A stretch of 64,000 nt of DNA from Chara braunii (lineage: Eukaryota > Plantae > Charophyceae), in the NCBI GenBank assembly GCA_003427395.1, contig BFEA01000034.1:3408125-3472124 (forward strand), written 5' to 3'. Positions within the stretch are counted from its first letter, which is position 1, and every line of letters begins with the position of its first letter. Position numbers and translations under genes: made by a program. The notes beneath the pieces are model-generated. The model saw only the letters and a program-made list of their open reading frames with translations, was not told where the DNA came from and searched no databases. Below are positions 1,230 to 45,835 of the stretch, in pieces.

Positions 1230-1569
1230 ATTTAAACCACAGGTCCCCCCGCCATCGAAAACCCCCGGTACCGGTGAGTTAGGGGAGCGTTTTTCGGAGG
1301 TCGTCCACCCCAACTCACCGATCTCGCGAAATCCCTGGGTACTGCACCAAGGCCCCACGGTGTAGAGGGCGGCCGACGGCGGGGTTTCATCAAGCGGCAA
1401 CGAAACGGTCGGGTGGTCCAGTTATTGGGCCGCCGACAATCTGTACTGGACTTTCTCGCTGTGGCGGGAATTGAAGGCCCGCAATGAAAATGTCATTGTT
1501 ATTGGGCCCCTCGTTTCTTGTCCTCTTCTCTCTCTCTGCGTACAGTTTACCGGGCAGCTCTGTTTGTGA

Positions 1570-1639
<70 letters not shown>

Positions 1640-2690
1640 CGTCACCAGTCCGTACGTACGNNNNNNNNNNNNNNNNNNNNNNNNNNNNNNNNNNNNNNNN
1701 NNNNNNNNNNNNNNNNNNNNNNNNNNNNNNNNNNNNNNNNNNNNNNNNNNNNNNNNNNNNNNNNNNNNNNNNNNNNNNNNNNNNNNNNNNNNNNNNNNNN
1801 NNNNNNNNNNNNNNNNNNNNNNNNNNNNNNNNNNNNNNNNNNNNNNNNNNNNNNNNNNNNNNNNNNNNNNNNNNNNNNNNNNNNNNNNNNNNNNNNNNNN
1901 NNNNNNNNNNNNNNNNNNNNNNNNNNNNNNNNNNNNNNNNNNNNNNNNNNNNNNNNNNNNNNNNNNNNNNNNNNNNNNNNNNNNNNNNNNNNNNNNNNNN
2001 NNNNNNNNNNNNNNNNNNNNNNNNNNNNNNNNNNNNNNNNNNNNNNNNNNNNNNNNNNNNNNNNNNNNNNNNNNNNNNNNNNNNNNNNNNNNNNNNNNNN
2101 NNNNNNNNNNNNNNNNNNNNNNNNNNNNNNNNNNNNNNNNNNNNNNNNNNNNNNNNNNNNNNNNNNNNNNNNNNNNNNNNNNNNNNNNNNNNNNNNNNNN
2201 NNNNNNNNNNNNNNNNNNNNNNNNNNNNNNNNNNNNNNNNNNNNNNNNNNNNNNNNNNNNNNNNNNNNNNNNNNNNNNNNNNNNNNNNNNNNNNNNNNNN
2301 NACAGACCTCCGTATGTACGGCGTTCGTGGTCCCTTACGGGGTCCGAAACCCGACGCCGTTCGGCCCCCGCCTAAAATTATTTCGGGGACAAAAAAAAAT
2401 TATTTTTTTCTGAGTTTTTTTTTTTTTGCAAGTTCTCTGTGACGTGAGGTACATGCATGTAAAATGTCAAGTCATTTGGCTAAGCCAAATAAGAATTACG
2501 AATCGCCATAGATGGCGGTGTTAAAATGTGCTCGCCCACGTATTTTTTTTTGGGTCCGCGTTCGGCCCGAACGGCCGAACGCATCCCCAAAGGGTCCCGT
2601 ACGTTCGGGCGTTCCGACCTGTAAACCGTAGGCACAGAGATAGAAGAGGACATATATATATATAAACATATATACATATATATATGTATA

Positions 2691-2923
2691 CAGGGTAACC
2701 GGCGGTCTGGACGGGCCGAACGCCCGAACCTGAACGCCCGAACGTATGGGACCCCTTCGGGATGCGTTCGGCCGTCCGGGCCGAGCGCGTACCCAAAAAA
2801 AAAAAAAAAAAAAAAAAAAAACAAATCATCAAAAAACAGGTTCGGACCCCGTACGAGACCCCGAACGCCCGAACGTACGGGGGTTCGCCCGGGGGCCTTC
2901 GTACGTACGGGCTGGTAACCCTG
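2691..2923. mobile_element. Tc1/mariner-like MITE in a TA tract
   Basis: Termini CAGGGTAACCGGC / GCTGGTAACCCTG with TA on both sides. Related inverted sequence lies at about 2548-2620 and 1637-1660. Confidence 0.6.
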
Positions 2924-3038
2924 TATATATATATATATATATTACTCTACAACAGTTGGTCGGGGTCACTTGGCCGGCCGTCCTGTTTTTTTGTTTATTT
3001 TTACTTTGTTTTGGACGCCGGCCCCATTTTCATGCTTC

Positions 3039-3127
3039 GGTTCAGCCTCCTGACGAGTCGGAGAAACTCCGACGAAACAGTTAGTCACAGCCCGTCATCT
3101 GTTGTCCTCCTCTCTCTCTCTGCCAAC
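3039..3127 (+). ncRNA. Hammerhead-core repeat, copy A
   Basis: CTGACGA at 3050-3056, perfect stem GTCGGAG/AAA/CTCCGAC, GAAA at 3074-3077, then CAGTTAGTC. Confidence 0.7.
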
Positions 3128-3249
3128 ATATATCGTCACAAACAGAAGTGTCCGGTAACCGTTGGCAGAGAGAGAGAGGAGGACAACAGATGACGGGCTG
3201 TGACTAACTGTTTCGTCGGAGTTTCTCCGACTCATCAGGAGGCTGAACC
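3128..3249 (-). ncRNA. Hammerhead-core repeat, copy B, with family 3' tail ending GACGATATAT
   Basis: Minus strand: CTGATGA (3238-3232), 7-bp stem II, GAAA (3214-3211). Confidence 0.7.
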
Positions 3250-3961
3250 GAAGCATGGAAATGGGGCCGGCGTCCAAAACAAAGTAAAAATAAACAAAAA
3301 AACGGGACGACAACAGTGCTGATGGGACATAAACACGTTTCGAAACCGGGGAAAAAAAAAAGAGAAAATGACAAAAAAATAAAATAAAAAATAGTTGACG
3401 AAAAAATAAGAATAAAGAGATTGAACATAAGACACAACATATGTTCAAATTGTTTGGCACATTGGCAGGGTACCGGCAGGAATACGGATGGTTCCAGAAT
3501 AGAACAAAAACAAGAAAAAATAGGAAAAAATAAATAAATAAATAAATAAATAAATAAATCAAGATCTCCAAGAATCCCCCGGAAGTCAATATGTTATGCA
3601 GAAAATTCAACAGAACAACTTTTGCCTCACGGTGACATCAATATTCCTCACGAATTTTAGAATAAATATTGTAATATACAAAACAACTTTTTACTTTTAT
3701 TATTATTATTATTTTTTTATTTTTTTCCCACACGGCGAAGTCAACTCGGGCCTCACTCGTACCATGCGCACATGGCCATTTCGTTCACCGACTCATAGGT
3801 ATGTGCATTCGGCATTTCCAAATGATTTTTTGTTGTTTGTTTTTTGTGTTTTTTTTTTTCTTCACAGACCACTGCAATGACAAGTTTGCGGTCGTTTTTC
3901 TCCCCTTCTTTATCCGTTTTTTTTTTTTTTTTTTTTAGAGAGACAGAAGAGGAAAACAAAC

Positions 3962-4033
3962 GAGGGGCTGTGACAAACTGTTTCGTCGGACTTTGACCGA
4001 CTCATCGCGAGGCTGAACCCTCAACCACTCTGC
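3962..4033 (-). ncRNA. Hammerhead repeat, copy C (core mutated to GCGATGA; stem I GAGG/CCTC and upstream TGGTT retained)
   Basis: Minus strand: GAGTGGTT^GAGGGTTCAGCCTC-GCGATGA-GTCGG-TCAAAGT-CCGAC-GAAA-CAGTTTGTCACAGCCCCTC. Confidence 0.6.
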
Positions 4034-4290
4034 ATATATATATATATGACGATATATATATATATATATGGGAATCGTCATCCGAGATTGTCTTATCCTC
4101 TTTTATTTTTTCTTGGGTTGTCACAATGTGGATCGGAGTTTTTTTTCATGCCTTGTCTTTTGACATCCTGGCTGGTCTTGTACCGTCGTCTGGCCTGTAG
4201 TTGTCGGGGGTGGTGTTTGCATGTGGGACTTGTCATATAGGCTTCTCATTTAAGATCTTTGCAGGCGCTTATCTATTTTGTATGGGTTGT

Positions 4291-4353
4291 GACAACAAAC
4301 GATGAGATGTGACAAACTGTTTCGCCGGAGTTTCACAGACTCATCATGAGACT

Positions 4354-4416
<63 letters not shown>

Positions 4417-4559
4417 GAAAAACAAAAAAATAGAAAACAAGAGAAAAAAAAGAAAACAAAATTCAAGAAAAACAAGATAAGATATGTTGATCTGTGGGAT
4501 GTGTTATTTGCTTTGTGACAATTAGGTTCGTCGGAGTTTCAACGACTCATCAGGAGGCT
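4291..4559 (-). ncRNA. Hammerhead repeat, copies D (4291-4357) and E (4514-4559), degenerate
   Basis: D reads ATGATGA...GAAACAGTTTGTC. E reads CTGATGA-GTCG...CGAC-GAAC. Both begin directly after (TA)n. Confidence 0.55.
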
Positions 4560-6252
4560 ATATATATATATATGTATATATATGTATATATGTATATATA
4601 TATATATATATGATATATATGATAACAGATTGTCACAACCCCGTCGTTTATTATCGTCTTCTCCCTCAATCCTTATAAGCCGAAGAAGGAAACGAACGAG
4701 CAAAAAAATAAAATAAAANNNNNNNNNNNNNNNNNNNNNNNNNNNNNNNNNNNNNNNNNNNNNNNNNNNNNNNNNNNNNNNNNNNNNNNNNNNNNNNNNN
4801 NNNNNNNNNNNNNNNNNNNNNAATAATAATAATAATAATGATACAACAATCGTAACTGCGAAAAACAAAACAGGGCGTTATCATTATTTGTTGTCATCAC
4901 AAGTGTGCAGCAGGAAGTATTAACATTTTTTGACCTAAATATTTGAAATAACACAAATAAAAGTGTGAAAATATTGCAAGAACGAATTATATGTGTCCCC
5001 ATTTTCGTTCACAAATATATGTTTGTAACCTACTGTATAACTCTTCAAAAGCCACGTGGCATATATGGCTGCCTTATCCGCCGTCGCCAAACTAGCAGGC
5101 ACGGTGTCCATAATTCCTACATAAAAAGCCACGTGGCAGCTATGGCTGCCATATCATAAATTCCTACACGAAGGACGACGAAAAAAATAAACCCTGCAAT
5201 TTCTAAACAAAATATTGTTGCTACATAAAACGACCACTTCCCTCTTTACAACACACGTTGCAACAATGGCTGCCTTATACGCCGTCACGAAAATGCCGGC
5301 CACGGAAAGCACGGCCAACGAAGCCACCATCACCACCATTGCCCTTCCGTCATTTCGTAAACGAACGACGAAAAAAACAAAAAATAACCAAAAAAATATA
5401 ATTTTATACCGCCTAAAAAATCGCACCTCCAACACCGCCATCCCCTCCGTCGTCGTTTCCTCCATCTTCACCCCCTCCCCCTTCCTCATCGCCGCCATCT
5501 GCACTCCCTCCCCCCTCCTCATCGCCACCATCTTCACCCCATTCCCCTTCGTCATCGCCGCCATCGTCACCCCCTCCCCCTTCGTCATCGCTGGTGGGAA
5601 GCGACAACAGGTTACCGTCTGGCGGACGGGGGAATGTCCATGCAGGGAAGTGAGAGTACGTGGCGGCTATGGCCTCCCAACCGATCGGACCGCGCGTCGG
5701 ATCGCCCCCCCAACCACCATTTAGCTCGTGCAGACCTTGCGGAAGGTCCCCCCATCCCTCTGCATTATGCACGGCTGTGTCCGTGCTTGATTGCCCAAAC
5801 ACGACAGAGGGCGTTGATGGAGACGATGGGGAGGCGGGCGGAGGCACGGGATTCGTCATAGGAACGGGGTTCGCACCAACCCCCCCCCCCGCCATGCGCA
5901 GCTGACGAAGACAACGACGGCAATGGCGCCGTCGAACGTGGGGNNNNNNNNNNNNNNNNNNNNNNNNNNNNNNNNNNNNNNNNNNNNNNNNNNNNNNNNN
6001 NNNNNNNNNNNNNNNNNNNNNNNNNNNNNNNNNNNNNNNNNNNNNNNNNNNNNNNNNNNNNNNNNNNNNNNNNNNNNNNNNNNNNNNNNNNNNNNNNNNN
6101 NNNNNNNNNNNNNNNNNNNNNNNNNNNNNNNNNNNNNNNNNNNNNNNNNNNNNNNNNNNNNNNNNNNNNNNNNNNNNNNNNNNNNNNNNNNNNNNNNNNN
6201 NNNNNNNNNNNNNNNNNNNNNNNNNNNNNNNNNNNNNNNNNNNNNNNNNNNN

Positions 6253-6331
<79 letters not shown>

Positions 6332-6445
6332 CCTCCGCGATGCGGACACAGCGTACAGACGTCTTGGCGAAGAAATCTCTCTCTCCTTCTTTTCGAACGG
6401 GCGTACGAAACATATACATATATATATATATATATATATATTTGT

Positions 6446-6476
<31 letters not shown>

Positions 6477-7400
6477 CCACGCCAGGACTTCGTGGAATGG
6501 GGTATGCCGGGGCGATGCAGTTTTGGACACATATGTTCCACTAGGGGTTTGGGGTTGGCCGAAGGGGGGGCATACAACGGCGTAAGGGGAGGTAGGAGGT
6601 GGTGGAAGATGGGGGGGGTGAGGTTGGGGTTGTCGAACACCCCATCGAAGTGGTGTGTCCATTTGACTCACCGCGTGTCGCTGTCGTCGATGCCTGAGGT
6701 GACAGAGAGATAGATGCCTGTCGTCTAACTCCAACCTCGTAAGACATCGACGATGGCGACAACCATCGTTTTATGTTCGTCTGTCTTCCCGAGAGAGAGA
6801 GAGAGAGAGAGCAACCGTTCTGTATAGATATGCATGTCGTCGCGACATGCATATGTCAACACCGTCCCACGATGTGACGATCCCGCAGGACGTCAACCAA
6901 CTGCGACATGCGCCGCAACGTGACACGTGGGAACTCAGACTCGCATGATGACCAGGTACCGTCGCGCCCCATCTCACTGTGTAGTGGCGAAGTGACGTGG
7001 CTTGCACGAAACCACCGCGTCGTTTCAGCCGCAGTAAGCCAACGGCACGAAAAAGATGAGAATTAAAAAAAAAAAAAACATTGCAGAACGAAAGTGAAAA
7101 CACTGCGAAAAAATATGCAAACAAATACCGAAAAAACAAAACCGAAATTGAAAAAAAAAAACCAAATATTCTGTTCGTTTGTCCGGATCCGTGAACACGG
7201 ACATCGTGCTGCAACGACGTCATTCCTTACTACCGGCCCTACCGGGTCCCACATTCGAAACGGCATGTCGGGATGGGACTCGGTAGGCCGCGAAAAACCA
7301 GTCGTCCGACCAAAATACAGCAACCTCGACATACAGGTCGTCCAAGGGTTTTCCACGGCGGGGGGACCTGTGGTTTAACCCATATTTCAATTTTGCCATT

Positions 7401-7468
<68 letters not shown>

Positions 7469-7851
7469 NNNNNNNNNNNNNNNNNNNNNNNNNNNNNNNN
7501 NNNNNNNNNNNNNNNNNNNNNNNNNNNNNNNNNNNNNNNNNNNNNNNNNNNNNNNNNNNNNNNNNNNNNNNNNNNNNNNNNNNNNNNNNNNNNNNNNNNN
7601 NNNNNNNNNNNNNNNNNNNNNNNNNNNNNNNNNNNNNNNNNNNNNNNNNNNNNNNNNNNNNNNNNNNNNNNNNNNNNNNNNNNNNNNNNNNNNNNNNNNN
7701 NNNNNNNNNNNNNNNNNNNNNNNNNNNNNNNNNNNNNNNNNNNNNNNNNNNNNNNNNNNNNNNNNNNNNNNNNNNNNNNNNNNNNNNNNNNNNNNNNNNN
7801 NNNNNNNNNNNNNNNNNNNNNNNNNNNNNNNNNNNNNNNNNNNNNNNNNNN

Positions 7852-7918
<67 letters not shown>

Positions 7919-7956
7919 TGTCCGAGCTCTTAGCCTCAGTGATTTGGCTACCTTAG

Positions 7957-8447
7957 GGCTGTGTTGCCCGTGCCCACGCAGTAGACAATATTATTCCTGG
8001 AAAGAACATGACCTCATCTATGGATTCTGAAAATTTCAGATTTTTCCGCGGGTTTGTCCGAGCACAGAAAAACGCCAAAGTTGCCACTTGCAACACACTT
8101 GTTTCGTTGCGCCTAACCTCCCTGTTTTGAGAAGACGGACCTCAACGCCTAGGCCTGAGGGGCCTTTTGCCGTTCACATGCCCTCACTTTTTTTTGGTGT
8201 CCACTTTTACCCGAGGACTGGTCCATGCCCCCCACTTTTTTTTGGGGTCCTTTTCCACATGAGGAGCGGTTCTTCCTTTTTCCAAAAGTCCCGGTTCTAC
8301 CAGAGCTAGCATGTAGGTGGTCCAATTGTGCCAAGGACCGGTCCCCAAATTTGTTTTGCCTCCTAAGAACCCACTTTGCGTCCTGGTCGCCCGCCACCAA
8401 AAATGTGACACCTTGACACAGACGCCAAGGCCCACTATACCACAGCC
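7957..8447. mobile_element. MITE-like repeat (GGCTGTG...CACAGCC, TTAG on both sides); inverted homolog at about 510-975
   Basis: About 450 bp of clear inverted similarity between 510-975 and 7988-8453; short TIR and 4-bp direct flank. Confidence 0.55.
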
Positions 8448-8515
8448 TTAGGGCTGCGAACATCCCCCTATAGTGGACTTCCGGCAAAATGCCTTTTTCT
8501 GTTAGGTACTGGTGG

Positions 8516-8848
8516 GGCGCCTGAAGTACCCGGGCGACAGGCTCGTTCGACTATGCTTCCATCAGGGCGGAGTGGGGCAAGTAGGGCTCATCTTAGCCCT
8601 GGTACCTGCAACTGCGGTCTGGTGATGGTCACCCCCAGACTGGAGGGTGGCGCCCCTGACTGGTAGACACTGAGGTAGGATAGTAGGAGTAGGGGTGCGC
8701 CGGAAAGAAATACGAGAGTGGTGGGTGGGGAGGGAGTCCCATAGGAATAGGGGGGCTCAGCCACATGGCCGAGTGCCGAAGGTGACTCTCATACGTCTAG
8801 AACCCAGCCTCTACAACAACGTGGGCTTTCAAAAAAAAAAAAAAAAAA
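8516..8848 (+). mobile_element. 5'-truncated retroposed insert (LINE 3' end or SINE) with poly(A) tail
   Basis: Poly(A) at 8831-8849; 12-bp TSD AGGTACTGGTGG at 8504-8515 and 8849-8860. Confidence 0.85.
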
Positions 8849-9493
8849 AGGTACTGGTGGAAACAAAAAAAAGAAACATTTTTGCGTCCTATGGACTCAA
8901 GGCCCGGGGGCGTACGGTGGTTGGCGCGATGCGCTCTAAGCCCGTACGATCACGTAGGACTGACGTAGCCATCACCAATCGTTGTCATCATTACGTCGTA
9001 GGTGAAGTCGTTTGTCTTGCTCGGTAATATCCGAACTCTCCTCATGGGAAGTCGAGTGAATGACTGTCTCCCACTATGATGCAGAACGTGTAGTAATGAA
9101 GGCGTGGTCCTATGAGAACGTGTATGGTTGTGAGCAGAGGTGCATAATTCAGACTGATGTCGCTGGCGAGCGCCGAGAGGGCGCCCGCTTTTGATATGAA
9201 TCGTAGGACTAAGTGAAGTCGTGCTAGTGTTAGGGCTACGGGAGAAGCCACATGCTGGAGCAGGTGATCTGGAGGAAAGTAATCGCTCACAAGTCCGAGA
9301 AAAGCGTCTGGTGGATACCTTTTTAAGTCCCTTCCTTGTCGTCTTGCGTTTCGAAAGCGAGGGTTCTATCTAGGAATAGGTTGGAAGACCTACATGTTTG
9401 GGCAGGTGTCCCAATAGGCACGCAAGCGCGGAGATCTCCGGGTACAGGAGGAGGATCAAGCCTTCCTTAGGGGTTAATAAGACGAGCAAGAGC

Positions 9494-12400
9494 ATGGCGG
9501 CAAGTCAACAGCGGAGTAAGGGTCGCTCTTCTCCAGCACATACATACGTACCTCTCTCAGACGAGGATAGGATGAAGTTGCTTATTTCAAAGTGCTACGA
9601 TGATGGGATTCTGTCGGAGAAATTCCAACATGGGGAACGGGTTGTAGAAGGCGGCATCCGTACTTTTATGGTCAATACTCGGTTGGATTAGCTGACCACT
9701 AACTGGTTGAAGGAGAGGACTCTTACAATCATATTTCAAGGAGAGGCTCGAGATCTTCCTATGCGCGTGAGATAAGACTTGATCAGAGCATACGAGAACG
9801 ACTGGTATAGACAACGAATATTCGACCGGATCGTTATACGGGGAAGGGTCCACGTTGAGGGACAAAATGTGGTATCCTACGTGGCACGCTCTAAGGAAGT
9901 CGCCCAATGGCTGATTGCAAAAGTCGAGGATACGGTGATGATTAGGGGTGTTGAGTATGGTATGCTATTCAAACCCTGACTCACTCGTACCGAATTGGAG
10001 GAAAAGAGGCGATTGGAGGATGAGTCCAAGTTTTGGGTCATGGCGATCAGGGTACCTTTAAGAGGTATGTTCCATGTTGAGAGTATGGTCAAAACAGCGA
10101 TGGGGCACGTCATCAACAGTCAGCCTCCGAAGCAAGATCGGTTGAGACCGAAACTGATGAACTTAAAATTGGACTTGGTGAAAGAAGCGGAAGGGAATTT
10201 TGAGCCTGAGTTGCCAATTCGGTTGGGAAATGAGGTGCTTCGTATAAAATTTGTCTGTAAAAACACCCCGTGGTCGACAGATGCAAGTGATGGCTTCATA
10301 CTACCGAGGAAGGATCTCCCAGAGCGGAGGAGGAGGAAGGGGAGCAAAAACGGTCAGCGATTTAGAAGAAGAGAAGGAGGGACTGATCGCTCGGACCGAT
10401 CGGAGGATAACCGCTATATTCGGGCAGCGGCAAGGGACCAAACTGGGGGAGGTGGAGAAGGGGGACTTCCTCGGCCGGCGGGAGCTGAAGGTAGGAATGA
10501 GAATTCGGTTGTAGCTTAGTCATCAAGGCCTCGGGCAGCAGTTCAAACCAGTTCTACTAGAAGCAGTGGGGCTGGCATTCGGCAAGCCTCCGGGAACGCG
10601 GGAGGAGCTAGAGCCTTGCAGGTACTTGCATCAAAGGCCAGGTCTGCCCCTTTTACCCCGAGACCGCCACAACCCCCTTTCATCCAAGCCAGGGCGCCCT
10701 GCATGTATGGAAGTGAGTTGCAGCAGTACGCCCCACGATGGGGTCCTACGCAGTGGCAGGGTTTTGGATATCAGCCGATTGGTATGAATCTCATGGGTAT
10801 GGATTTATACCAACAGAGCTTTTATGGGGCAGATCGAGCTATGAACCATAGGGTGAATCACTTTAATGACAATGTCATGAGACAAGGCCACGATCAAGGA
10901 GGTTCGAGGGGAGGTCAAAGTCGTGCATTAGACCCTCCCCAAGAGGAACAGGTACCGGCTATACAAGAACAGCAGGCTACCCAAGTGGAGGACGACGCAG
11001 AAGGCTCAGAGGGCGATAGTGAAACAGGAAGCGGTCCTAGGAACGAGCTACAGGTGGAAGTCGAGGAGTTACATCCGGGAGATTTTATCCCGAACGGAGC
11101 AGAGTTACAGGGCCAAGTGGCGACAAATCGGGAAGAGCAAATGCTGCTTTCGATTGTCGTGTCTCTACAAGATCAAGTGGTCCATGTGATAGGGCTACTT
11201 GACAACAAGGAGATCATGTCTCTCCCATCCATTGCCCTGACAAAAGTTCTCACGCCTGCTATAATCACCGAGAAAGTGAAATACTTGTATGCTGATAGAT
11301 TGCATTTCAAGATCTTTCTAGAATTTTACTTGCCAAAGATGAGAGTAGTTTTAGAGGACGATTACATCATCCGTTATACTGTTGTTTTTATTGATGCGCG
11401 GTTCTCACTTGATGAGTGGGCAGGTAGGCAAAGGGTTGGTATAGGGTCTTTCTCTTTGGATGCCCTCATTCAGGCATCGGACGAAATCCTGTCACAAGTA
11501 GTGGTTGGCCCAGGCGTTTCTGCTACTTTTATAGCCAACCTGCATCCTAGCATGCCTAGAACTTGTAATCTCGCTTCCAGTCCTTTTTTCCGGTGTGTAA
11601 GCGTGAATCGGGCGGATATGGATGAGTCAGACGCAGCAGAGGGTGCGTGTGCAACAAACCCCGCTCCAGAAGGAATCCAATATGCAGACGGGTGGAAGCT
11701 CAATTAGTAGACTTTGATAGTGATGTGTGGGGTCAGTAGTGTTGAATCAGACCACAAATCGGAGATGCGACATGGGTGTTCGCCACAGTATATGTTCCGA
11801 ACGACTCGACCAGTCGGGCGGTGTTTTTTTATACCCTACCGTATATTCTGTCATGTGTTGGGAACCTGGTAATTGGCGGAGATTGAAATACCACATGCTG
11901 TCCAGGACTGGATTCAAAAGCGGGGGAAGGGATGCCTGCCGATAGAATCAGACTGATCAGGTGGATGGAACAGTGGGCGCTTAGGGATGTGTACAGAGAC
12001 CTGAACCTAACAGCCACAGGCTGTACATGGTTCGGTCCAGCCCCTCGATTGGGAGGGGTGAGGAGGAGGATCGATTTTTTCCTGGTGTCAGAGGAAGCAA
12101 AGAGTTGTGTTCTAAGCATGGAGGTGCAGAATGTCCCGCTCTCTAACCACAAACCAGTGGTGATGAAGTGTGTGGTGGCAGAGTTGGGGGATAGAGGCCC
12201 AGGGTGTTTCCGTTCAAATACGGAAGTCCTTTTAGATGCAGACATTACCTCATGGGTGGAGGGTTTCAAGGCGAGTTGGAACACAGCTAAAACATCCTTC
12301 GCCTCGTTAGCCGAGTGGATTAATGCTGGCCTGCGAATCATTTCATTGAGGTTTGACTCTTATTCAAGAATTGCTGCTTTGCTTCGGAACAAGGAGACGG

Positions 12401-20703: not shown

Positions 20704-20747
<44 letters not shown>

Positions 20748-22139: not shown

Positions 22140-22196
<57 letters not shown>

Positions 22197-27756: not shown

Positions 27757-27816
<60 letters not shown>

Positions 27817-33800: not shown

Positions 33801-35826
33801 CACTGCAGTGTGTCTGGCACGAACTTGGCACGAAGAGTGTGATGTGAACACCAGATTCTTGTCAATTTAGTGTACAACGACCTCCAGAGTGCAGCTCCTT
33901 ATTTACATGAAGATAATGTGAAATGCAGACCAGACACATTCTAGTTGAGCAAATATTGAAATGCAGAGTGTGCAGGGCCTTGGCTACAACAGGCTGGTAG
34001 CTCTGGTGATCGCTGTCTCTGTAGCACTCACTGGCCTTTTCCAGGTGTGCTTGATCTGCAGTTCATGGGCTTCCCAATACTCCAAGAAGAGGGATTTGTG
34101 GCATCTCCCGCCCAACAAGTATGAAATGACAGTGCAGGAGTTGTCCGGCATTGTACTGATGCAAGTGGCCCTTGTCTCTTTGTGTGGCACTCATTTGTGC
34201 AGTACCTGTGTGATCATCTGGATCCTGCGATACCTTGTGAGCTTGTCCGAGGGTATATGGACAACATTCCACATGCATGGAATGTGGTGCTGGTGGGAGG
34301 CGTGCGAATGCTGGTGGATGCCTGCCGGCCTGCTGACATTCGACCCGAAACTAATGCTGAATACCTTTGCAGGTAATTTGGGGGAGGTGGGTCTTATGTT
34401 TTCGTGCTTGCTTTCCTCATATGTCTTGGCAGTTGCTTTTTTTCTGCTTGTTCCACCCCTCCACGCTTTACCTTCTCGTCCTTCTCTTCTAACCTCTCAG
34501 CCTCCCCAACACGCCACGAAAAATGCTTCAGTGACCATAATTCTGAGATCCTGACTTGCTTCGCTTCTTTGCATACATGTGGCAGGGAATCTGATCAAGT
34601 AGGCAGGGTTTATTGAAACATGTTGGCGCACTCTGGGTTTATTGAAGTTTCCTTTCTGATTCTTTTCTTCGTCTTTCCACCTAGTTCTGTCTCTACCTTG
34701 TTCTTGGTTCCACTGCGCAGAGGTCATGCCCCAAGCCCCCTATAGCCCACATTGTGATGACACATGCAGTCATTATTTATAGCTGCTGTTCGAGATGCAG
34801 CGTTGCTGGACACGCCGCTGAGTCATTGGGATTTGGTGGTCTTTTACATACCACTCTATGGCCATGTATTATGCTGTTTGATGTGTTGGGCGGAAGTCTC
34901 TTAGCTGTCATAATTTTTCAAGGGATTAGGAATGCAATGCTGTTGAATGCTGCTACTAGGTGCTCTTCTGCATTGGCATTTGTTTGACAAGAAGTGGAGT
35001 ATGTAGGGCTGGGAAAGCATGCATGCCGAAGGCTGCAGGTATTTTGATCCCCTGTTGGCATTTGGCAGCGAGCTGTTGTTTATTCCTCTTATGTTTCACT
35101 TTGGCTTTGCTCAAGCATCGGTGTTGTGGGTAAGGTAATCTAATATCAATTTGGCATTCGAGTGCTGTGTCTTTTTCTCCTTTCCTGATTAATGCTAGTG
35201 AACTACATTACCTTCCTGATTACCTATTACCTTCCCTGAGTTCCTGTTCGATGCTGAGGACGGTTCTGACATTGGTGGATTCTGCCTCATTGTTGTTGAA
35301 GGACTCTGGGGTTTCTGTAATTTGGATTGGGCGGGTAATGCTAACATGCTGCTGAGTAAGAAAAACGGGAAGTGATTTTGAGACATCAACAACTAAGATG
35401 GCGAGTAGGAGGAGAAGTAAAAGATGGCCGGGGGGGGGCTCGAAATTAACTAAGATGGCGAGTAGGAGGAGAAGTAAAGAAGGTGAGGAGGATATAAGCA
35501 AGAGATGGCGAGTAGGGGACGATGTAAAAGATGGCAAAAGGAGTAAAGATGCCGAGGAGGGGATAAGTAAAAGATGCAGAGGAGGAGGAGAAGTAAAAGA
35601 TGGCATTGGAGAGCTCTTGCTCGGGTCTGCCTGTTTTACTGTATGTCCAGGGACGGTTCTGCATCAGCTCAGAAAGATCTCAGTGATGAATTGGCCGGGG
35701 CAGCTCGATTGGCAACAGAAGTACCTGTGGTGGATGAACAACAGCTTATGGCTGCAATAGATTCTGTTAAACAACGGGGGGTGGGGGAAATGACGGGGTA
35801 GGAAGGAGGTTGACGGGTGAGGAGGG

Positions 35827-35870
<44 letters not shown>

Positions 35871-38800
35871 CACAGACTCACAAACACCAGTAGAAGAAGA
35901 AGAAGTTCCTGTCCCTCGCCTAATGACATGCAGGCTCAGATGGGGCGTGGCAACAAACCGACGGCAACGGCGCTTGAACAGGAGATGGCAGGCTCGCTGC
36001 TCCACGGTGAAAAAGGGGGCTTGCTCGGTGCTCGACAGTGATGTGACGGCTCACTCACTGCTCGACGGGGATGGGAGTGCTTGCTCGTGATGAGAGCACG
36101 GTAAGTAAGGGGCGTGAGGGGCAAGGCGTGTTGCTGCGAGATCCCCGCCCAAGGATTTTCAAACAGGTGGTTTATCTGGGCCGCTGATGTTTTGAGATTG
36201 ACGGCTCTGATTGGTCGCCTGAAAACATAATAAAAATGGGGCTTAGCCAGCCTGGTGTATTTTTTGCGACTCCGGCAGGGTCCTCTAGTCCGCAGGAGGC
36301 ATCCTAGGCCGGTCTTTGGGCCGGTAACCCTCCCCAGCAAAAATGCGCTGTGAACTGGGGTCCAGCCGGGCCAGTCCACCGGTCGGTCCGACTGGGACGG
36401 TGCCAGATGGAGGAGGGTCCCCCGGGCTGACCGGGGAGCAGCACTGGTCTATATTCGCTGATGCTCCCCTTGATCACCGGATCCGGTTTTCGAAAACCAC
36501 CTCAGATTTGTGCTCAATTTGACATGCAGGAAATAACCATGTAAAAAATCTGAGAAAAAAAGAAATTCTGTTGCATGAAGTTTGGGATAATCGATGCCTG
36601 GATATGTGGGCCTGGGCAGCCCCAGCAGCCAAGCCTCATATTACTAGGGGCATATGTTAAGGAAGCAGAAAGTCTTTTGGATACCCCTTTTCTTTTCATA
36701 GCACCGTGTAATGGATGGTAGAATGGCAGCATATGATGTGTGCATGGTGAAGTCGTTGTACATTATTGAATGCCTTTAAAAGGATTTCACGTGCAGACCC
36801 TCCGAAGTCCCGGTTCCAAAGTCCTGCTTGGGTCCATTCCCAGAGTCCTGGGAGGTCCCAGTCTTAGGGTTCCTGTAGCCCCTTATGTGTCTGTAGGTTC
36901 TACAAGCGAAAGGGTTACAGTCCGGTAGGGTCCAGATTCTGAAAGTTGTAGGTCAGTAGAAGGCCGGTCCGGTACCGGATAGAAAAAAGTCCAGAAGTCC
37001 CAAAGTCTAATTTTCAGCAGCATCCTGGGAAAGTCTGGAGATTTGGAACTAGCAACTGCAGCCGACAGGCTGCGAGGACCGTTATCCATCTGGAGCAGAC
37101 AAAGTACACCCAAGTGCTGCTGGTTAGAGGGAGGTTGAGGATGGCGATCGGGTGCCATAGCTAGGATTGCGGGAAGGAGAAGTCCGATGTAACCGAGTCG
37201 GGTAGTTATAGGGAGTAATGTGAGTGCATCCAGGGATAAACTGTGGCCGATCTGAGAGTTGAGAGCAAGTGTAGCATACCTAGAGCCTACTACACGAGGC
37301 GGGCTTATCTCGTTTTCAGGCAGGCAGGTACGTCTTTGGTACACAGACTTCAGGTATGTATCCGCTTTTGGTGTTTAGCTTATTTTGCGTCAGGGGGTGT
37401 CTTATCAGCATTTTGTTTAGCTTGTTTTTGAAGCCTGAATTTATTTGCGTCAGGGGGTGTCTTATCAGCATTTTGTTTAGCTTGTTTTGAAGCCTGTATT
37501 TGCTCTGCGTCAGGGGCTGTCTTACCAGCATTTTGTCCAGCTTGTTTTCTAAGCCTGACCAGTCTTCGAATGCTGGCCAGCTTGCTTTTGAAGCCTGGCC
37601 AGAGCTTGGCCACAGAGCGACTCAGCGGATACTTGGCTGATCAGACAGCCCAGATTGGAGGCCGGGTTGGATGGTGGCTGGCCCCGTAGTATATAGGAGA
37701 TGTGGACCCAGCAGTTGGCAGGTAGGTTCTGGAGGAGTCCAGCACTGGTGGAGGTAGAGGAGCAGCGCTAGAGGGAATGAGAGGTGAGGTAGAGTTCACT
37801 TTTACTGGTCAGTATCATCATTATCAGAGAGAGAGAGAGAGGTCACTGGATTCGACATCTGAGTTCATCATTGGAGGTTGAGGTGGAGGAGAGACCATTG
37901 TTATTTGACACTGCCGTACATCGAGTTATCTTCTTCTTCTCCTCCTTTTTTTCCCCCTCCACCCACGTTCAGGAATGATTTCAGCGGGGAGACTCTTCTG
38001 TGTTTGGATCGCTCCCCGCTTGATCTGATATTGTCATTTTCTGTATCGTCAGACTTTCTTGTTTGTTTCGAGTGTTCCGCTTTGTCATGTTATATCTCTT
38101 CCTCACGTTGGATGATCCTTTGGACTTTATTGCCGACGGTTCACTCTGGGCATGCATCAGCAAGAGAGGGAAAGAGAGAGGGAGACAGCGAGCAGGGAGG
38201 TTCGAGCGCCGGAAGATTGAGAGAGCATAGGGAGAGCATATATATATATAGGGTTCAGCCTCCTGATGAGTCAGTGAAACTCCGACGAAACAGTTTGTCA
38301 CAGCCCCTCATTTGTTGTCCTCTTCTCCCTCTCTGCCTACAGTTTACCGGGCAGTTCTGTTTGACGATATATGTTTTGCTGGCTTGTGATGGGGTGTGAA
38401 CCGACAGTCTGTAGAGTTTTCCATCTGGTGTGGGTGAGTGATAGTCTACTTTGATTTTGGTTAAGGTAGATTATCATTTACAGTGTAATCAGTNNNNNNN
38501 NNNNNNNNNNNNNNNNNNNNNNNNNNNNNNNNNNNNNNNNNNNNNNNNNNNNNNNNNNNNNNNNNNNNNNNNNNNNNNNNNNNNNNNNNNNNNNNNNNNN
38601 NNNNNNNNNNNNNNNNNNNNNNNNNNNNNNNNNNNNNNNNNNNNNNNNNNNNNNNNNNNNNNNNNNNNNNNNNNNNNNNNNNNNNNNNNNNNNNNNNNNN
38701 NNNNNNNNNNNNNNNNNNNNNNNNNNNNNNNNNNNNNNNNNNNNNNNNNNNNNNNNNNNNNNNNNNNNNNNNNNNNNNNNNNNNNNNNNNNNNNNNNNNN

Positions 38801-39213
38801 NNNNNNNNNNNNNNNNNNNNNNNNNNNNNNNNNNNNNNNNNNNNNNNNNNNNNNNNNNNNNNNNNNNNNNNNNNNNNNNNNNNNNNNNNNNNNNNNNNNN
38901 NNNNNNNNNNNNNNNNNNNNNNNNNNNNNNNNNNNNNNNNNNNNNNNNNNNNNNNNNNNNNNNNNNNNNNNNNNNNNNNNNNNNNNNNNNNNNNNNNNNN
39001 NNNNNNNNNNNNNNNNNNNNNNNNNNNNNNNNNNNNNNNNNNNNNNNNNNNNNNNNNNNNNNNNNNNNNNNNNNNNNNNNNNNNNNNNNNNNNNNNNNNN
39101 NNNNNNNNNNNNNNNNNNNNNNNNNNNNNNNNNNNNNNNNNNNNNNNNNNNNNNNNNNNNNNNNNNNNNNNNNNNNNNNNNNNNNNNNNNNNNNNNNNNN
39201 TTTGACGATATAT

Positions 39214-39292
<79 letters not shown>

Positions 39293-41073
39293 CCTGGTTG
39301 ATGAGACTGGTGATAGAGGCCAATGACAGCTTGTACTCCGACTCATTTCCTGCATAATAATACAGCGTTTGCATGGCTTTCATCTCAATGAGTGCTGACT
39401 TGTCATTCGTGTTGTGTGTGTTTTGAATCGTCTGTGAGGTTTCGGTGCTCTGTTAGTGAGAATCGTTGTGGAATTGAGTTGGGTTCCTTGCACCTTTGTT
39501 ATCAGGGCTTCAGGGGGACAGTAGGGTGGTCTCTAGCTGGCTTTGTGACAAAAAAATTTCGGGGTTGGTGTGAAGTCTAGGCGCGTTGTTCTCATAATAT
39601 GATTGTACCCTGTTCCTACTTGTCTTGGGTGAGTGTGTTTTCATTGCATCGGCCTGTGGGCATGGTCTTTGTTACTCTGTGTATGCAAGCCTGCTTGAAT
39701 GTCTCTTTCCCCCTCTCTTGGGTGGACGGTGGGCTGGTTTCGGGGTTGAAGGGGAGATGATTGCTGTCTGAATGAGTGTGGTTCATTTGCTTTGGGTGAT
39801 CAAATGGGAAAATGGAATGCGGGGATGCACTGCAGGTATTTGCCACTGAAACGAGTGTCTTTGCGGGCAGGTGAACGGGAGGTTCTTGATTTGCAGAGGC
39901 TTCTTCTGCATGAGGAGATTGGCCGAGGGGCCTCGGGAGCAGTTGTTTATCGATGCACATTAGGGGATGTTACCGTTGCTGCTAAAGTGAGTAAGGTGTC
40001 ATTTGATACCACTGCGTATCCAATCCTCCCAAGCATGTGAGTCAGAACAATCAAGAGGACGTTTTTTGTCACAGTGAATGAACGAGTGTAAACTGAAGGA
40101 AGGCGTTTGTAGAATAGGACCAAGAGACCTTTCGTGCTGTTTGGTAGCACACAAGCAACCAACCGGTCATGGTGTTTGGTAGAAGAGCAAGTAACTTAGT
40201 GTCATTGGGGACACTGGGACAGGTACGCTGTCTGATTAGTTGATGTGGGAGGTCTTGCTGGACTGTGTTTCAAAGTTTTCTCTCCCTTTTCTGTTCCCTG
40301 TTGAACCTGTTTGTTTTTGTTACTTGAAGCTGATTTCACTCTTTGTTTGTCTCAACGAGTGTTGCCATGGATCTTGGGACCTTCTCAGCAGCGGCTGTGT
40401 GGTTGTGCAGGTGCTCTTTGGCAGAGACCTCAGGGCATATCATGCGAACTTTGGAGGCGTCAACCGTTCTATTAAAACTTCTTTGCTGTGGTGGCTTGAC
40501 GCACCATGACAACCCTTGCACCCATAGATAGATAGTCTGACAGATGTGATTCTGCGAACTCTGGAGAATGCCAAGCATGTTGAGTGTGTAATGAAGGCCA
40601 CATTTCATGTGTTTGCTGAGAAGATGAGGACACATCTGTTTCTTCGAGTTGGCCAGCCAGGGAGCACCCTCGATTATGGAGGGGGCAAGAGTAGAAGGTG
40701 CTGTCATCTCCTGGGAGAGATGAACACTGCTCGTTGATCTGTTTGTGACTGCAATTGTGTGCTTGTTTGTGGTTGCAATGCAGGTGCATGATTGTCTGTT
40801 GTATTCGTCTTTTCCAACGGCAGCATGAACTGGCTAGTTTGTGTGGACTTGCCTTCCTGAGTGGTGCGGCTTCATGTCAAAATGCCTATACGCAACCATA
40901 CGGTGGCCTCCTGAGTGGCAGGCCATTTGTCTCAACATGCCTATATGCAGTCTAATGCTGTGATGAGATCCTGCTATGGTCTAACTCGATACTTTGTGAA
41001 CATCCTTTTTTTTTATAGAAAAAACAATTGGACCATTTCTCGATTTATGCGTGTAATCCTTTGCGCAGGGGCC

Positions 41074-41105
<32 letters not shown>

Positions 41106-44100
41106 ACGGATGTCCCGAAAGACCTTTTTGAACATTCTTAATTAGGGCTAAGCGTCATACGGATGTTGTGTGCGTATGTTATGTGCTGTATGGGCGCAGG
41201 TGATGAGGTCGACTGGAATCAATGGTTGGTTGTGTCATGGCAACAAGGAGGTGATGGGTGGGGTTGCCTGTCCGCAGAGAGATTTCACTCTGCCACTGAG
41301 TGAACTGCGCTTGTTAGCAAGCTTGCCTCGCCATCCAAGCATCGTAGAGTTCTACGGCCACCACATCTTTACTGATTATTATGGGATGACCTCGGGGCAG
41401 GAAAGGTGTAGTTCAGCACCAGAGACGCAGAACAATGGCCGAGTGGCATATGGCCTGATGTTGTTCATGGAGTATGTTGCCGGCGGGTCTTTGGAGGTAT
41501 GGTCATCTTCTTTCCTCCCGAGTGTCTTTTAGTTCCCTCTTCACCTACTGTAGGCCTTGTGTGGCTCGCTGGATGTTTCAGGACGCCTCGTCTCACAAGA
41601 CCGGAAGCTGTGATGATCATGCAGGAGATCTCTATTTTGGTCATGCGCACAGCATGAGGACCCTGAGTTTGACCAAGTCTCCAAAGCTTTATTTGGGGAT
41701 TTTTTTTGTGGGAGGTGGGAGGGGAAAGGAGGGTGCAGGGTAAAGGGACAGATAAATTCAATTCATGTCGGAGTTTCATTTCCCTCACCAATGGTTTTAG
41801 AGGGAAGTTACTCTGCGTTGGAATTAGAATGACCTGTTGACCTAGCTCAGTTGGTACACCCACAATACAGATGTGAGCTCAAATCCACATGGAACTAGAT
41901 TTAAAAAAAGAGGCAAGGAAACAAAAAAGAGAATGGCCTGCTGGCTGTTCAAGGGCTCGTGGATCTGCAAATGGCTCTGCTGAAACATATATCAGTTCAC
42001 TGCTTCTAAGTTCTCTAACCAATGCCACTGATGACCTCCCATAGTTCAACCCGCTACTTAAGGGGCGGCCTCAGCTGAGCTACGTCAAGGTCTAGGTTAT
42101 GATAACACATGGTCTTCTGACAGACCGACCGATTGTGACTGTGCCATTTGTGACAGAGAGGGGCTGCGCATTTGAACCGTAAGTGCTTATCCCATCAGTG
42201 CACCACCAGTAGTGCACCCCCTATATACAAGTGGTTAACAGGGACCCCCACTTTTCAGCTCTTGGGTAACGTTGGTCCAAAACTGAAATCAGCGTTTTGG
42301 GGTCAATCATNTTTTTTTTTTTTTTTTTTTTTTTTNTTTTNTTTTTGTGTGTGTGTGTGTGCTGTTGGTTAATATGCTCTGTCCGGTCTGTGAATCGGTG
42401 GCAAGTTTGGGGAAGAGTGCATTTGGGTTTTCTTATAAATGGGTTGAGAAATTGTCTGAAAATTTAGGTCTCAGTTAACCATCTCTCACCCTATATCAAC
42501 TGGCTGTTCGATTTAGTGAGGAGGAAGATCGTTGGGTCTTTTGGATGAACAGGTGGCATGCTTTCTGGATAGATAGAGAACTGCTTCACACAAATTCAAT
42601 GAGGGGATTATTTCTCCACTGGCTCTCATCCAGTAACAACATGCTTTTTTTTTTATCTCCAAATTTTCAAAATAAAGAAGAGCGTTTTATTGGGCGGTGA
42701 TTGCAACCGTCTGGATCAGATAGAACTGGTGTTTGAGGATGGTACACGATTCCCAGAAAGACATCCAAGTGCTCTGAATGGACCCAGGGATTTTCATGGA
42801 ACATGCTTCAGATGTGGCACATCAAACATGCTGCTTGGAAGATATCTGGAGGTAGGACAGCATCTCTGGTAGAGTTTCCTGCAAAAGTGGTGAATCCAGA
42901 ACAAAAATGGAAAGAGATTGGGTGTGGGGTTGGCAGATAGGGCACATGTGGGAAGAATCTACGATTGAATAGCATATCTTGGAGGGCAGATTTATGGGTA
43001 CATTTTTTAGGAGGAACCGTTATTCAGAATGCGAACTTTTCCAAACAGATGGCAGGGGATTGCTGAAGGGCGAGGGGATCGGCCAGATCAGATCCACTAC
43101 TGTGGCCCCCCCCCCTCCCTCCCCCTCCCCTCCTCTGTAGGGAGAAGCTGCTGAAATGAAGTTGCACGTTAAACCAGCAGTACCTCTGAGCCTCTCTTTT
43201 CCGATGTGTGATTTTGCCTGGCCCTGAAATCTCGAACTGTTGCGGGGGGTGCGATTTCCCTGGTACTGCCAACCGTTTTCCGCTGGTAGACCAAGCCTTG
43301 CAGTGGCACTGGATTAAACAGTGAGTGCACACAGGGTAGGTCGGGTGGTTGAAGCACAAACGAGCAAAGGAGGAATAGGTGCATCATATATGGGCCCAGT
43401 GGGTTGGGTTCGTTTGGTATGCTCTCTATCTTAGAGAGGTGGCATCCGCACAGGGTAGGTGGGCGAAGTAGTGTTGGTTGAAGAAGAGACGAGCAAAAGA
43501 GGAGGAACAGGTGCATCATATATGAGCCCAGTGAGTTGGGTTATTTTGGTATGTTCTCTATCTCAGAGGGGTGGCATCTGTCTGAGATCTTCCAGTTCAT
43601 TGAACATAATGCTTGCTCTTTCTTGCAAACCTTGTCCAGTTCTCAGTGTCCTTTTTTTTCAAGAAGATAGCTGGCATGCATCTTACACTTGTTTTTGATT
43701 GTGGTGGTGAACCTTTCTTATGGCCCTGTTCTTTCTTCCTTCACTCTCTCTCTCTTAGCTTCCCCTTTTCTTTTGTTTTCTTTCCTTCTTTCCTTCCTTA
43801 TTTGCTTCCTTTGTCCTGTCCTTTCTTTGGAGCAGGGTTACCTTGCAAGATGCCGTGAGCGGGGGGATCAATTGTTTCCTGTGGCGATCAGTGTCCGGAT
43901 TGCGAGAGAGGTGGCTAAAGGAATCGCGTGGCTTCACTCTCAGGGGCTGATTCACAGAGATATCAAGGTAGCCCATCATGGGGATCAGTCTCCAGCCCAT
44001 CAGATTGCTTTGTGTTCAGTATGCAGAGTAGGGGTGCTCTGGTTCACACCTGTTCACCCCAGTCCGATTACTTGTGGGGTGTGTCTCTCCCTCTGGACTG

Positions 44101-45545
44101 GGGTGAACAATGGCACACTTAAGTTTAGATGCAGGTGCCATTGTCCTGGAGTCTAGGTTTCTAAACTTAAGTGTGCAGGACAATGGCCAATGCTCCCACT
44201 TAAGTTTAGATGCAGGTGCCATTGTCCTGGAGTCTATTTATCGGAGCATTGGCTGCTCCAGTCCAATTTGAGAAGAAAGCATGATCGCAGCCAGGAGAAA
44301 TGGATAGAGAAGCCAAACGAAAACTACAAATGGAGGCCAAACGGCGTATCTCAGTTGGTTTCACACACAAGTTGCATTTAGGTGGTCGTGGGTTCAATCC
44401 CCCTCGGCTGCCTGCGGCATGCTTGGTGTTCACCACCTGAGATAGTTCGCTTGGCCACCTTAGTCGGTCTTGGTAGGGCCCTGGGTTCTCTTAGAGGCCC
44501 TAGCTCCTGCTATCCCTCTCTGGTATAGTTGGGTAGGTAATGAGGTATATTGCTACACTTATGGAAATCGCTGATGTGACAAATCTGGCATCCGGGCCAT
44601 CCGCAGTCCTTCAGGGCCGACGACCCGGATCGAGACGTGGTCTTAAGATTTTAAGATCGTGCGACGATCCATGTCGTCCGCGGTTCTACCGGGTGACAAC
44701 CAGGATCCGCGGGCGATATTACGATTTTAAGGTCACATAACGATCTGGGCCGTCAGCCCTGTACCGGTTGGCGAACGGCCCAGATTAGAAGTTCGCAACT
44801 GAAAGGCCTGGGGAAAAACTGGTTCCAGGTGGGCCGGTCCCCTATCCGTCTACGCTCAGGCTCTTCCCTCTACCCGGTAGATCAGGTTTGCACCCGTATA
44901 GATAGGTAGGTAGTGTGACGGATATCCCTACGCTTATAGAAATCACTACTGTGACAAATCTGGCATCCGGGCCATCCGCGGTCCTACCACGCCGACAACC
45001 CGGATCGTGATGTGGTCTTGAGATTTTTAGATCATGCGGCGATCTAGGTTGTCAGCGGTCCTACCAGGCTACAGCCAGGATCGACGTGCAGTTTTGAGAT
45101 TTTAAGGTCGTGCAACGATCTGGGCCGTTGGCCCAGTACCGGTTGGCCAACAGCCCAGATTCGAAGTTTGCAGCCGAAAGGAAGTTAGGGCTGCCCTGCC
45201 TGTGGAAAAACCGGTTCCATGTGGGTTGGTCCCGTCTTGGGGTGGTGGTGCATTTTTTTATTTTTTATTTTTTTGTGAGTGGTGTGTAGTTTAAGGCAAC
45301 ACACACTGGGACGGGCACAGTGTATTGTTAACGAGACAACACACTCATGCGGATGCCCGCCTGCCCACCGGCCGCAAGCACACTCTCAAACACACATGGA
45401 CGCATGCACACAAATGCATGGTAGGGAGACGGTCGTGGTGGAACCTCCTGATGAGTTGGTGAAAGTCCAATGAAACAGTCTGGCACAGTGATGTTTTTTT
45501 TGCGGAGTTCACACAAACACACGAAGAGTGGGTAAACATACAAGT

Positions 45546-45641
<96 letters not shown>

Positions 45642-45741: not shown

Positions 45742-45834
<93 letters not shown>

Positions 45835-45835
45835 N

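Follow-up and report, generated by a model that had tools for sequence, protein, structure and literature searches.

The stretch of DNA analysed here, called the window below, comprises 64,000 nucleotides of the charophyte alga Chara braunii (GCA_003427395.1, contig BFEA01000034.1, positions 3,408,125 to 3,472,124 of the forward strand). It contains about fourteen broken copies of a mobile element that is non-coding, very abundant in this species and equipped with a predicted hammerhead ribozyme. All copies were aligned to a family consensus and positions in the element were numbered from the predicted cut of the ribozyme, with +1 being the G of GAGG. A strict pattern for the hammerhead (CUGANGA, a stem II of free sequence and CGAAAC) matched three times in the window, where 0.07 matches were expected. 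The relaxed family pattern, consisting of the core and stem II with up to three mismatches, matched eight times against an expectation of again 0.07. When the copy at 38250-38372 (copy F) was compared with the window by BLAST, seven core-bearing copies and three 3' fragments were recovered, plus a diverged copy at 49980. The original prediction, made from the letters of the window, had named the same seven core-bearing copies (A to G) and the same three 3'-only fragments, and all of them were present at the places claimed. It had also stated that complete tails end in TATATA, which holds: the 3' end of the element, TGACGATATAT, occurs five times in the window (0.02 expected), once directly after an assembly gap at 39201.

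The first group of copies lies in the left part of the window. A 3' fragment (+55 to +128) is found on the plus strand at 1506-1579. It is 93% identical to the consensus, ends in TGACGA and runs into a (TA)n tract at 1572-1636. An internal fragment (+68 to +102), identified by BLAST and alignment, follows on the minus strand at 2618-2652 and has a TA tract at 2652-2685 on its 5' side. Copy A (+4 to +92; 3039-3127, plus strand) has an intact core but neither the cut site nor the 5' strand of helix III, and scores 19.3 bits with the Rfam model Hammerhead_3. Copy B (+4 to +126; 3128-3249, minus strand) is complete to TGACGATATAT and scores 21.4 bits. Together, copies A and B form the arms of a tail-to-tail palindrome at 2979-3309. 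Because these arms also include about 65 nt of flanking sequence that does not belong to the element, the near-perfect palindrome seems to stem from a fold-back duplication of inserted sequence or from an artefact of the assembly, and not from insertion itself. Copy C (-10 to +86; 3937-4034, minus strand) starts right after (TA)n, and its helix III still has the 5' strand. The core has changed to GCGAUGA, and Rfam gave no match. The 3' end of copy C is cut short and followed by A20 (3917-3936), and the copy looks like a retro-copied, prematurely polyadenylated transcript. A solo 3' end (TGACGATATATAT) is located inside a TA tract at 4047-4059 on the plus strand. Copies D (about +5 or +9 to +71; 4291-4353, minus strand) and E (+9 to +54; 4514-4559, minus strand) both start after (TA)n and are truncated at the 3' end. 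In copy D stem II is damaged, and in copy E, which scores 17.7 bits, GAAA is changed to GAAC. The group ends with a fragment (+41 to +83) at 4624-4667 on the plus strand, located after a TA-rich tract.

All pieces in the right part of the window are on the plus strand. Copy F (+2 to +126) is 96% identical to the consensus; (TA)n precedes it immediately, and its start lies one base beyond the predicted cut. A longer copy follows it head-to-tail. The 5' arm of this copy (38373-38493) matches the reverse complement of the ribozyme arm imperfectly and enters an assembly gap. After this gap, the 3' end (TTTGACGATATATAT) of the hidden copy re-emerges at 39201-39215. Copy G at 45420-45510 belongs to a sister family. 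It has the same hammerhead module, with the cut site GUC^G, but a T-rich 3' part, is not associated with a TA tract and scores 34 bits with Hammerhead_3. An old, diverged tail (+37 to +124; 49980-50065) and an old, diverged 5' arm (50208-50300) show 74% and 72% identity, respectively. The solo 3' end, the 5' arm and the re-emerging 3' end of the interrupted copy and the two old pieces had been absent from the original prediction. None of the main-family copies in the window has a complete ribozyme: copies A, B, D, E and F lack the 5' strand of helix III and copy C has the mutated core. An EDR1/CTR1-like kinase gene at about 32700-48800 (plus strand), in which Pfam recognises EDR1 at 32696-33340 and kinase exons at 43689-44156 and 48259-48768, contains copies F and G and the long copy in its introns, all in sense orientation.

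Our copy survey included the window and nine further C. braunii loci of the same assembly, which were reached by an exhaustive protein search with the open reading frame (ORF) of a long interspersed nuclear element (LINE) in the window. In three of the first four loci obtained in this way no copy was present. The copies in the obtained loci are 97-99% identical to those of the window. The LINE itself is a degenerate remnant with a zf-RVT domain at 13518-14474 (plus strand), perhaps starting from about 10000, and is 62% identical to a C. braunii reverse transcriptase protein of 1497 amino acids (P0001). Its best relatives are proteins encoded by GCA_003427395.1, the assembly that papers on C. 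braunii cite for the species. Word-index protein searches with the LINE ORF, with an LRR ORF and with the 41-residue frame across copy F returned no match.

To these loci we added a pile-up of the reads of three oligo-dT RNA runs and one DNA run of C. braunii on the region 38190-38430. In the DNA run 11,425 contigs fell on copy F, and the RNA runs gave 6,000-14,000 reads each. The family is therefore huge and transcribed. First mates were 3-4 times commoner on the minus strand at copy F; if the libraries are of the usual stranded kind, the transcripts are mostly in the sense of the ribozyme strand. The depth ramps of the pile-up were dominated by contig and read edges and were unusable for a histogram of 5' ends. 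Soil and rice-paddy metagenome and metatranscriptome runs contained about one fifth to one quarter of the sampled words of 37900-38490, which is roughly the share of the repeat, and the element could be a sensitive marker of Chara in environmental data. A metagenome scan for the core pattern returned one locus (L001), a chance match in a bacterial coding sequence without stem II.

Since the main-family copies are truncated, the 5' side of the ribozyme was taken from the reads. Ahead of 38250 the loose read ends share an upstream consensus of 30 nt, whose last part, GCAGACUGUU, stands directly before GAGG. Within it, GCAGACUGU pairs with ACAGUUUGU, which follows the GAAA, to a helix III of nine pairs, two of them G·U. 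Helix I is the hairpin GAGG-GUUCAG-CCUC and helix II is formed by GUCGG...CCGAC, arranged around CUGAUGA...GAAA. The minimum-energy fold of the 65-nt consensus is exactly a type III junction with -22.7 kcal/mol and a helix III of 9-10 bp, so the stems I and III, whose formation had been proposed as a test of the prediction, are both formed in the predicted structure of the consensus. Helices I and II are closed by loops and helix III is open; among the window copies, both strands of helix III are kept only by C and G. The predicted cut is located after GUU (GUU^G), 128 nt before the 3' end TGACGA(TA)n. The consensus CGGTC^GAGG that had originally been given for all copies is correct for copy G of the sister family only, as the main family reads CUGUU^GAGG in the loose read ends. 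A type I hammerhead of the Penelope style (GAAAC-AGUUU-GUC^ACAG) was also considered. It was rejected because helix I cannot form beside the core, where the bases do not pair and only a distant GAGGG/CCCUC is possible, and because the type III fold is complete with the upstream consensus. The modelled structure supports a type III hammerhead in the element.

The CUGANGA...GAAA core is exact in the copies A, B and F and present with decay in C, D, E and G. In the family pile-up the core is invariant except for the free N of CUGANGA. Only this N and a U-to-C change that converts a G·U into a G-C pair exceed 10% within the ribozyme; a third listed site at 38273 is copy F's own departure from the family. 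In the 73-nt tail, about seven sites are variable. Among the copies, U, A or C precedes the cut, never G. The cut triplet (NUH) is GUU in the consensus and in copy C, GUC in copy G and in the copies of the loci L008 and L010, and of the UA[U/G]A type in the copies of the locus L007. When 14 copies were compared, stem II showed three compensated double changes (C-G to U-A, G-C to C-G and G-C to A-U) and helix III two changes from G·U to G-C.

Copy G was placed in the sister family on account of its different 3' part and its homologue in L008. The sister repeat (window 45420-45510; L008 8895-9010) starts about 24 nt upstream of the cut, ends with a T-rich stretch and GYGGAGTT and is not tied to (TA)n. 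At the Rfam search that had been recommended for the prediction, the sister copy L008:8923-8978 reached 49.0 bits and passed the gathering cut-off of Hammerhead_3 (RF00008), which is 48.5 bits, whereas the window copies stayed below it with 17.7-34 bits. The sole window match at the Rfam gathering thresholds was a full-length U6 spliceosomal RNA gene on the minus strand at 41022-41123 (93 bits).

We then compared the 5' ends of the copies with the position of the cut. In the window, copy F starts at +2, copies A and B at +4 (counted as one event, since they form the palindrome), copy D at about +5 to +9 and copy E at +9. Copy C starts upstream of the cut at -10, and the fragments start further in, at +37, +41, +55, +68 and +116. 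The obtained loci contain, besides long copies, starts near the cut at +2, +3, +6, +8 and +9 and starts further in at +18, +41, +50, +55 and +76. Taken together, 9 of the 20 copies that are truncated inside the 128-nt part start at +2 to +9, which agrees with the original prediction of 5' ends near the cut. Under uniform truncation the probability of this clustering is 1.3e-6 for an interval of 8 nt and 8e-6 for an interval of 10 nt; for the 64-kb window alone it is 0.003. The copies D, E and F had been described as starting directly after (TA)n, about 1-8 nt past the cut. All three do follow (TA)n. The clustered starts lie inside helix I just past the cut and not 3' of the stems. Structural stops of the copying enzyme are expected on the 3' side of stems. 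The cluster supports, without proving it, that many of the template RNAs ended at the ribozyme cut, and the ribozyme probably sets the length of many copies.

The 3' side of the element is tied to microsatellites. The window contains ten (TA)n tracts of at least five units, which make up 0.45% of its bases. Seven of the ten abut a copy and an eighth is 13 nt away from one, in line with the preference for TA microsatellites that had been postulated. Beyond the 3' end of the element, the pile-up shows (TA)n followed by heterogeneous flanks. Two other repeats were noticed in the window. The region 2300-2900, between TA tracts, is a GC-rich repeat with inverted CGAACG/CGTACG motifs around poly(A)/poly(T) runs and resembles a miniature inverted-repeat element, and at 5444-5608 a C-rich unit of 33 nt is present in four tandem copies.

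In the window and the obtained loci the 3' end of the element is constant where present, whereas the 5' ends vary. Stacked arrays were seen in head-to-tail and in inverted arrangement, for example in the loci L007 and L009. At 17552-17730 of the locus L006, the region +50 to +109 of one copy is fused directly to +6 to +128 of a second copy. This chimera looks like a template jump of the reverse transcriptase at an RNA end near the cut. With its non-coding longer copies of 210-300 nt, its variable 5' truncation and such template-jump chimeras, the family behaves like the non-autonomous retroelement that had been proposed. Its 5' truncations, partial tandems, inverted copies and microsatellite targets agree with a Penelope-like element of the Chlamys type or a non-autonomous derivative of one, and are also compatible with some elements that have no long terminal repeats (LTRs). 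The search for adjacent coding ORFs, which had been advised, was done by applying Pfam to 28 window ORFs. It identified the zf-RVT remnant of the LINE, LRR exons and the kinase exons, and no reverse transcriptase or GIY-YIG domain beside the window copies. A short interspersed element derived from tRNA, 5S or 7SL RNA was tried as a candidate and rejected, since no small-RNA-derived 5' part was detected: ARAGORN found no tRNA origin of the 5' parts, and Rfam in the E-value mode found only the hammerhead in the long copies.

What precedes the ribozyme in a complete element was derived from the right flank of copy F. In the pile-up, this flank (38373-38493) is itself a very abundant repeat. It continues into the upstream consensus of the ribozyme by an overlap of 8 nt and by similarity to a long copy of L007, and because of this continuity we regard it as belonging to a longer copy behind F, of which it forms the 5' part. 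The flank had also been considered as a separate minus-strand 'family 2', and is better read as the plus-strand 5' arm of the same element. An independent copy of the 5' arm, 98.75% identical, is present in L009. A composite of 302 nt was built by joining two consensus pieces from the reads to the stretch of the window and the tail of the consensus. It is predicted to fold into a hairpin of about 115 bp and a 70-nt tail with -144 kcal/mol in all. The hairpin part alone has -129 kcal/mol (z = -15 against shuffles), and its antisense only -64 kcal/mol. Where the two arms differ, the sense RNA is left with a G·U pair in 22 cases and with A·C in 2 (two-sided binomial, 3.6e-5). This modelled hairpin, with wobble pairs in the sense strand only, is the most novel part of the family. 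The 5' arm read backwards contains no CUGANGA and hence no antisense ribozyme.

At both independent copies of the 5' arm the assembly breaks at the tip of the hairpin, with gaps at 38494-39200 of the window (707 N) and at about 2560-2706 of L009 (contig BFEA01000012). The hairpin probably causes these gaps, whose stated lengths are unreliable; as a practical consequence, the element seems to interrupt the assembly of the Chara genome. Within the window, the long copy 38373-39215 is the only one interrupted by a gap. No claim made here depends on the spacing across the other gaps of the window. The long copies of L007, which belong to other and older subfamilies, are non-coding and measure about 293 and 214 nt; one of them is located beside a host exon on the other strand. 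They form no rod and fold no better than shuffles, so the rod is limited to the main subfamily. In the three readable longer copies, 100-170 nt of non-coding sequence end at a TA tract or at the tail of another copy, and none is joined to an ORF.

These observations can be combined into one scheme. We give a probability of roughly 70% to the reading that the window copies are dead copies of a very abundant, non-coding and non-autonomous retroelement of C. braunii which is propagated as follows. The element of the main subfamily would be about 300 nt long and consist of a 5' arm, a type III hammerhead arm that can pair with the 5' arm, and a 70-nt tail ending in TGACGA(TA)n. The reverse transcriptase would be supplied in trans, with a Penelope-like element of the Chlamys type as the prime suspect. 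Copying would start from a nicked (TA)n microsatellite as the primer, set against the terminal (UA)n of the RNA. When the hammerhead has cut the RNA at GUU^G, 128 nt before its 3' end, the cDNA would run off and yield copies of 120-127 nt that start 2-9 nt after the cut. As these copies are made without the cut site and one strand of helix III, their RNA could not be cut any further. The rarer long copies would be made from uncut RNA, and jumps of the enzyme between templates would give rise to arrays of stacked and of inverted copies. The hairpin of the main subfamily would compete with the ribozyme fold and may set the ratio of short to long copies. The family with its abundance and transcription, the predicted fold, the (TA)n association and the clustering of the 5' ends are supported directly by our data. 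Cleavage inside the cell, priming of reverse transcription at the target and the choice of the partner are inferred from there.

Several results weigh against this scheme. Copy F and the copy L009:14044-14168 share the start at +2 together with a 2-nt deletion in the tail, and some identical starts may have been inherited from a truncated source copy and not have arisen by repeated cleavage. The RNA runs gave no report of a pile-up of RNA ends at the cut, which is a weak test with oligo-dT libraries and with a copy F that lacks the site; in the same libraries several hundred reads per run cross the cut into the upstream consensus. The covariation in the family is sparse, which we ascribe to its young age. 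The window copies score only 17-34 bits against the Hammerhead_3 cut-off because they are truncated or decayed, the main family being without the upstream pairing partner, and the minimum-energy fold of copy G is not a hammerhead. Simple target-primed copying also leaves the truncated 3' ends of the copies C, D and E without an explanation. No ORF for a reverse transcriptase or GIY-YIG nuclease was found by Pfam near any copy of the window. Finally, the long hairpin of the main subfamily would sequester the ribozyme.

The first alternative is that the repeats are the 5'-truncated 3' terminal module, a part of the pseudo-LTR, of an autonomous Chlamys element (Chlamys-2_cBra or the endonuclease-less PLE-X type). 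Of the three types of Chlamys element that Craig et al. 2021 described in C. braunii, two carry a canonical hammerhead at the 3' end, and very high copy numbers, partial tandems and inverted copies were reported (PMC8557442). According to the same paper, insertions of the Chlamys clade favour microsatellites and can be tandem or inverted, and Chlamydomonas has non-autonomous relatives with the same 3' end. The stacked, head-to-tail and inverted arrangements of the copies described here agree with this. Because of these published features a Chlamys partner is likely, and the earlier statement that nothing similar is described in this lineage was too strong. As an account of the repeats themselves, however, the alternative is unlikely. 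The three readable longer copies end after their short non-coding part and none is attached to an ORF. Cervera and de la Peña 2014 (PMC4209133) described the hammerheads of Penelope-like elements as type I or minimal dimeric forms, whereas the one described here is predicted to be type III. Targeting of (TA)n was reported for Naiads, whereas Chlamys elements use (CA)n and (C)n (PMC8557442).

The hammerhead could also be an inactive relic or a passenger, with the cluster of 5' ends resulting from stalling of the enzyme or from amplified truncated source copies. The RNA ends missing at the cut and the many reads crossing it (the same weak test), the start and the diagnostic tail deletion common to copy F and the L009 copy, and a long hairpin that would hide the ribozyme are what such a relic would lead one to expect, and Penelope-like elements without hammerheads proliferate as well or better (PMC8557442). 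We nevertheless consider it improbable. The starts at +2, +3, +4, +6, +8 and +9 belong to copies with different flanks and identities. The core and the stems are kept in the consensus, the common variants fall on tolerated positions only, and the base at the cut is never G. Stalling at a structure should have produced ends 3' of the stems, and the observed starts are inside helix I past the cut.

A plant-type retrozyme, an LTR element with a hammerhead in each LTR whose RNA is cut twice, circularised and copied by a Ty3/gypsy enzyme, shares the type III hammerhead (PMC4918200) and could be suspected from joints in the RNA reads at which a read 'goes back', but it is very improbable, as no LTR-like direct repeats of 300-400 bp surround the copies, the three loose matches to a tRNA-Met primer-binding site (4.3 expected by chance) are not near any copy, and the copies end in a microsatellite and not in a 4-bp target duplication; the retrozyme label of the original prediction was given up. 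The 'goes back' joints contain TA-rich filler and several of them are also present in DNA contigs, so they represent stacked genomic copies and not junctions of circles. Circular RNA was rejected on these grounds as their source, the oligo-dT libraries being unsuited to circles.

Within the retroelement scheme, the main subfamily may be a hairpin-shaped, viroid-like element whose RNA switches between a closed rod and an active ribozyme. This extension is drawn from the modelled folds and we regard it as tentative and rather doubtful. If true, the switch between rod and ribozyme would decide whether a complete, propagation-competent copy or a disabled 128-nt copy is made. A type III element of a charophyte that has no LTRs and is targeted to microsatellites would then stand, as an intermediate that is still living, between Penelope-like hammerheads, plant retrozymes and viroid-like RNAs.

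Eukaryotic genomes are known to contain hammerheads in three settings: in Penelope-like elements (type I or minimal), in the LTR retrozymes of plants (type III) and in tandem repeats of animals. For the combination seen here, a monomeric type III hammerhead in a short, hairpin-shaped, (TA)n-targeted element without LTRs, no description was found in the searchable literature. One of the closest known systems, from the same organism, is Chlamys (Chlamys-2_cBra, PLE-X type), with which the repeats have in common the very high copy number, the 3' hammerhead, the insertion into microsatellites and the tandem and inverted stacking. Compared by description only, Chlamys elements differ in being coding and several kb long, whereas the repeats here are non-coding and at most about 300 nt; the published targets (CA)n and (C)n also differ from (TA)n, which is used by Naiads (PMC8557442). 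C. braunii, a streptophyte alga, is thus host to hammerhead-bearing Chlamys elements as well as to the family described here.

The ribozyme itself resembles the type III hammerheads of RF00008 from plant retrozymes, Avsunviroidae and satellite RNAs in its CUGAUGA...GAAA core, its closed helices I and II, its open helix III and its NUH site. In contrast to these, it is predicted from sequence, is carried by a short microsatellite-targeted charophyte repeat without LTRs and has GUU at the cut in place of the usual GUC. Like the plant retrozymes (Cervera et al. 2016, PMC4918200), the element is non-autonomous, non-coding and transcribed, carries a hammerhead of type III and is predicted to give a strongly base-paired RNA. 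Retrozymes, however, have LTRs, a primer-binding site and a 4-bp target duplication, whereas the copies here end in (TA)n. The short animal repeats, such as Sm-alpha of schistosomes (PMC4918200, PMC4209133), are similarly abundant, non-coding, retroposed, hammerhead-bearing and probably mobilised in trans. They differ in having type I hammerheads with a minimal helix III, which act as dimers in tandem arrays, in contrast to the monomeric type III form with a 9-bp helix III predicted here.

R2 and other non-LTR elements carry ribozymes like that of hepatitis delta virus at their 5' end (Eickbush and Eickbush 2010, as referred to in PMC4918200). As far as that account goes, these elements correspond to the one described here in that a self-cleaving ribozyme would define the 5' end of the reverse-transcribed RNA. 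The R2-type ribozymes cut at their own 5' edge and the copies keep the ribozyme, whereas here the predicted cut inside the ribozyme would disable the copies. Copies whose 5' ends mark the cut would make the action of a ribozyme readable from the genome, a rare opportunity. According to a proposal of De la Peña and Cervera, retrozymes descend from Penelope-like elements (PMC5680766). The element of C. braunii sits between the groups in which hammerheads are known, and it bears on the relations among these groups and on the origin of viroid-like RNAs.

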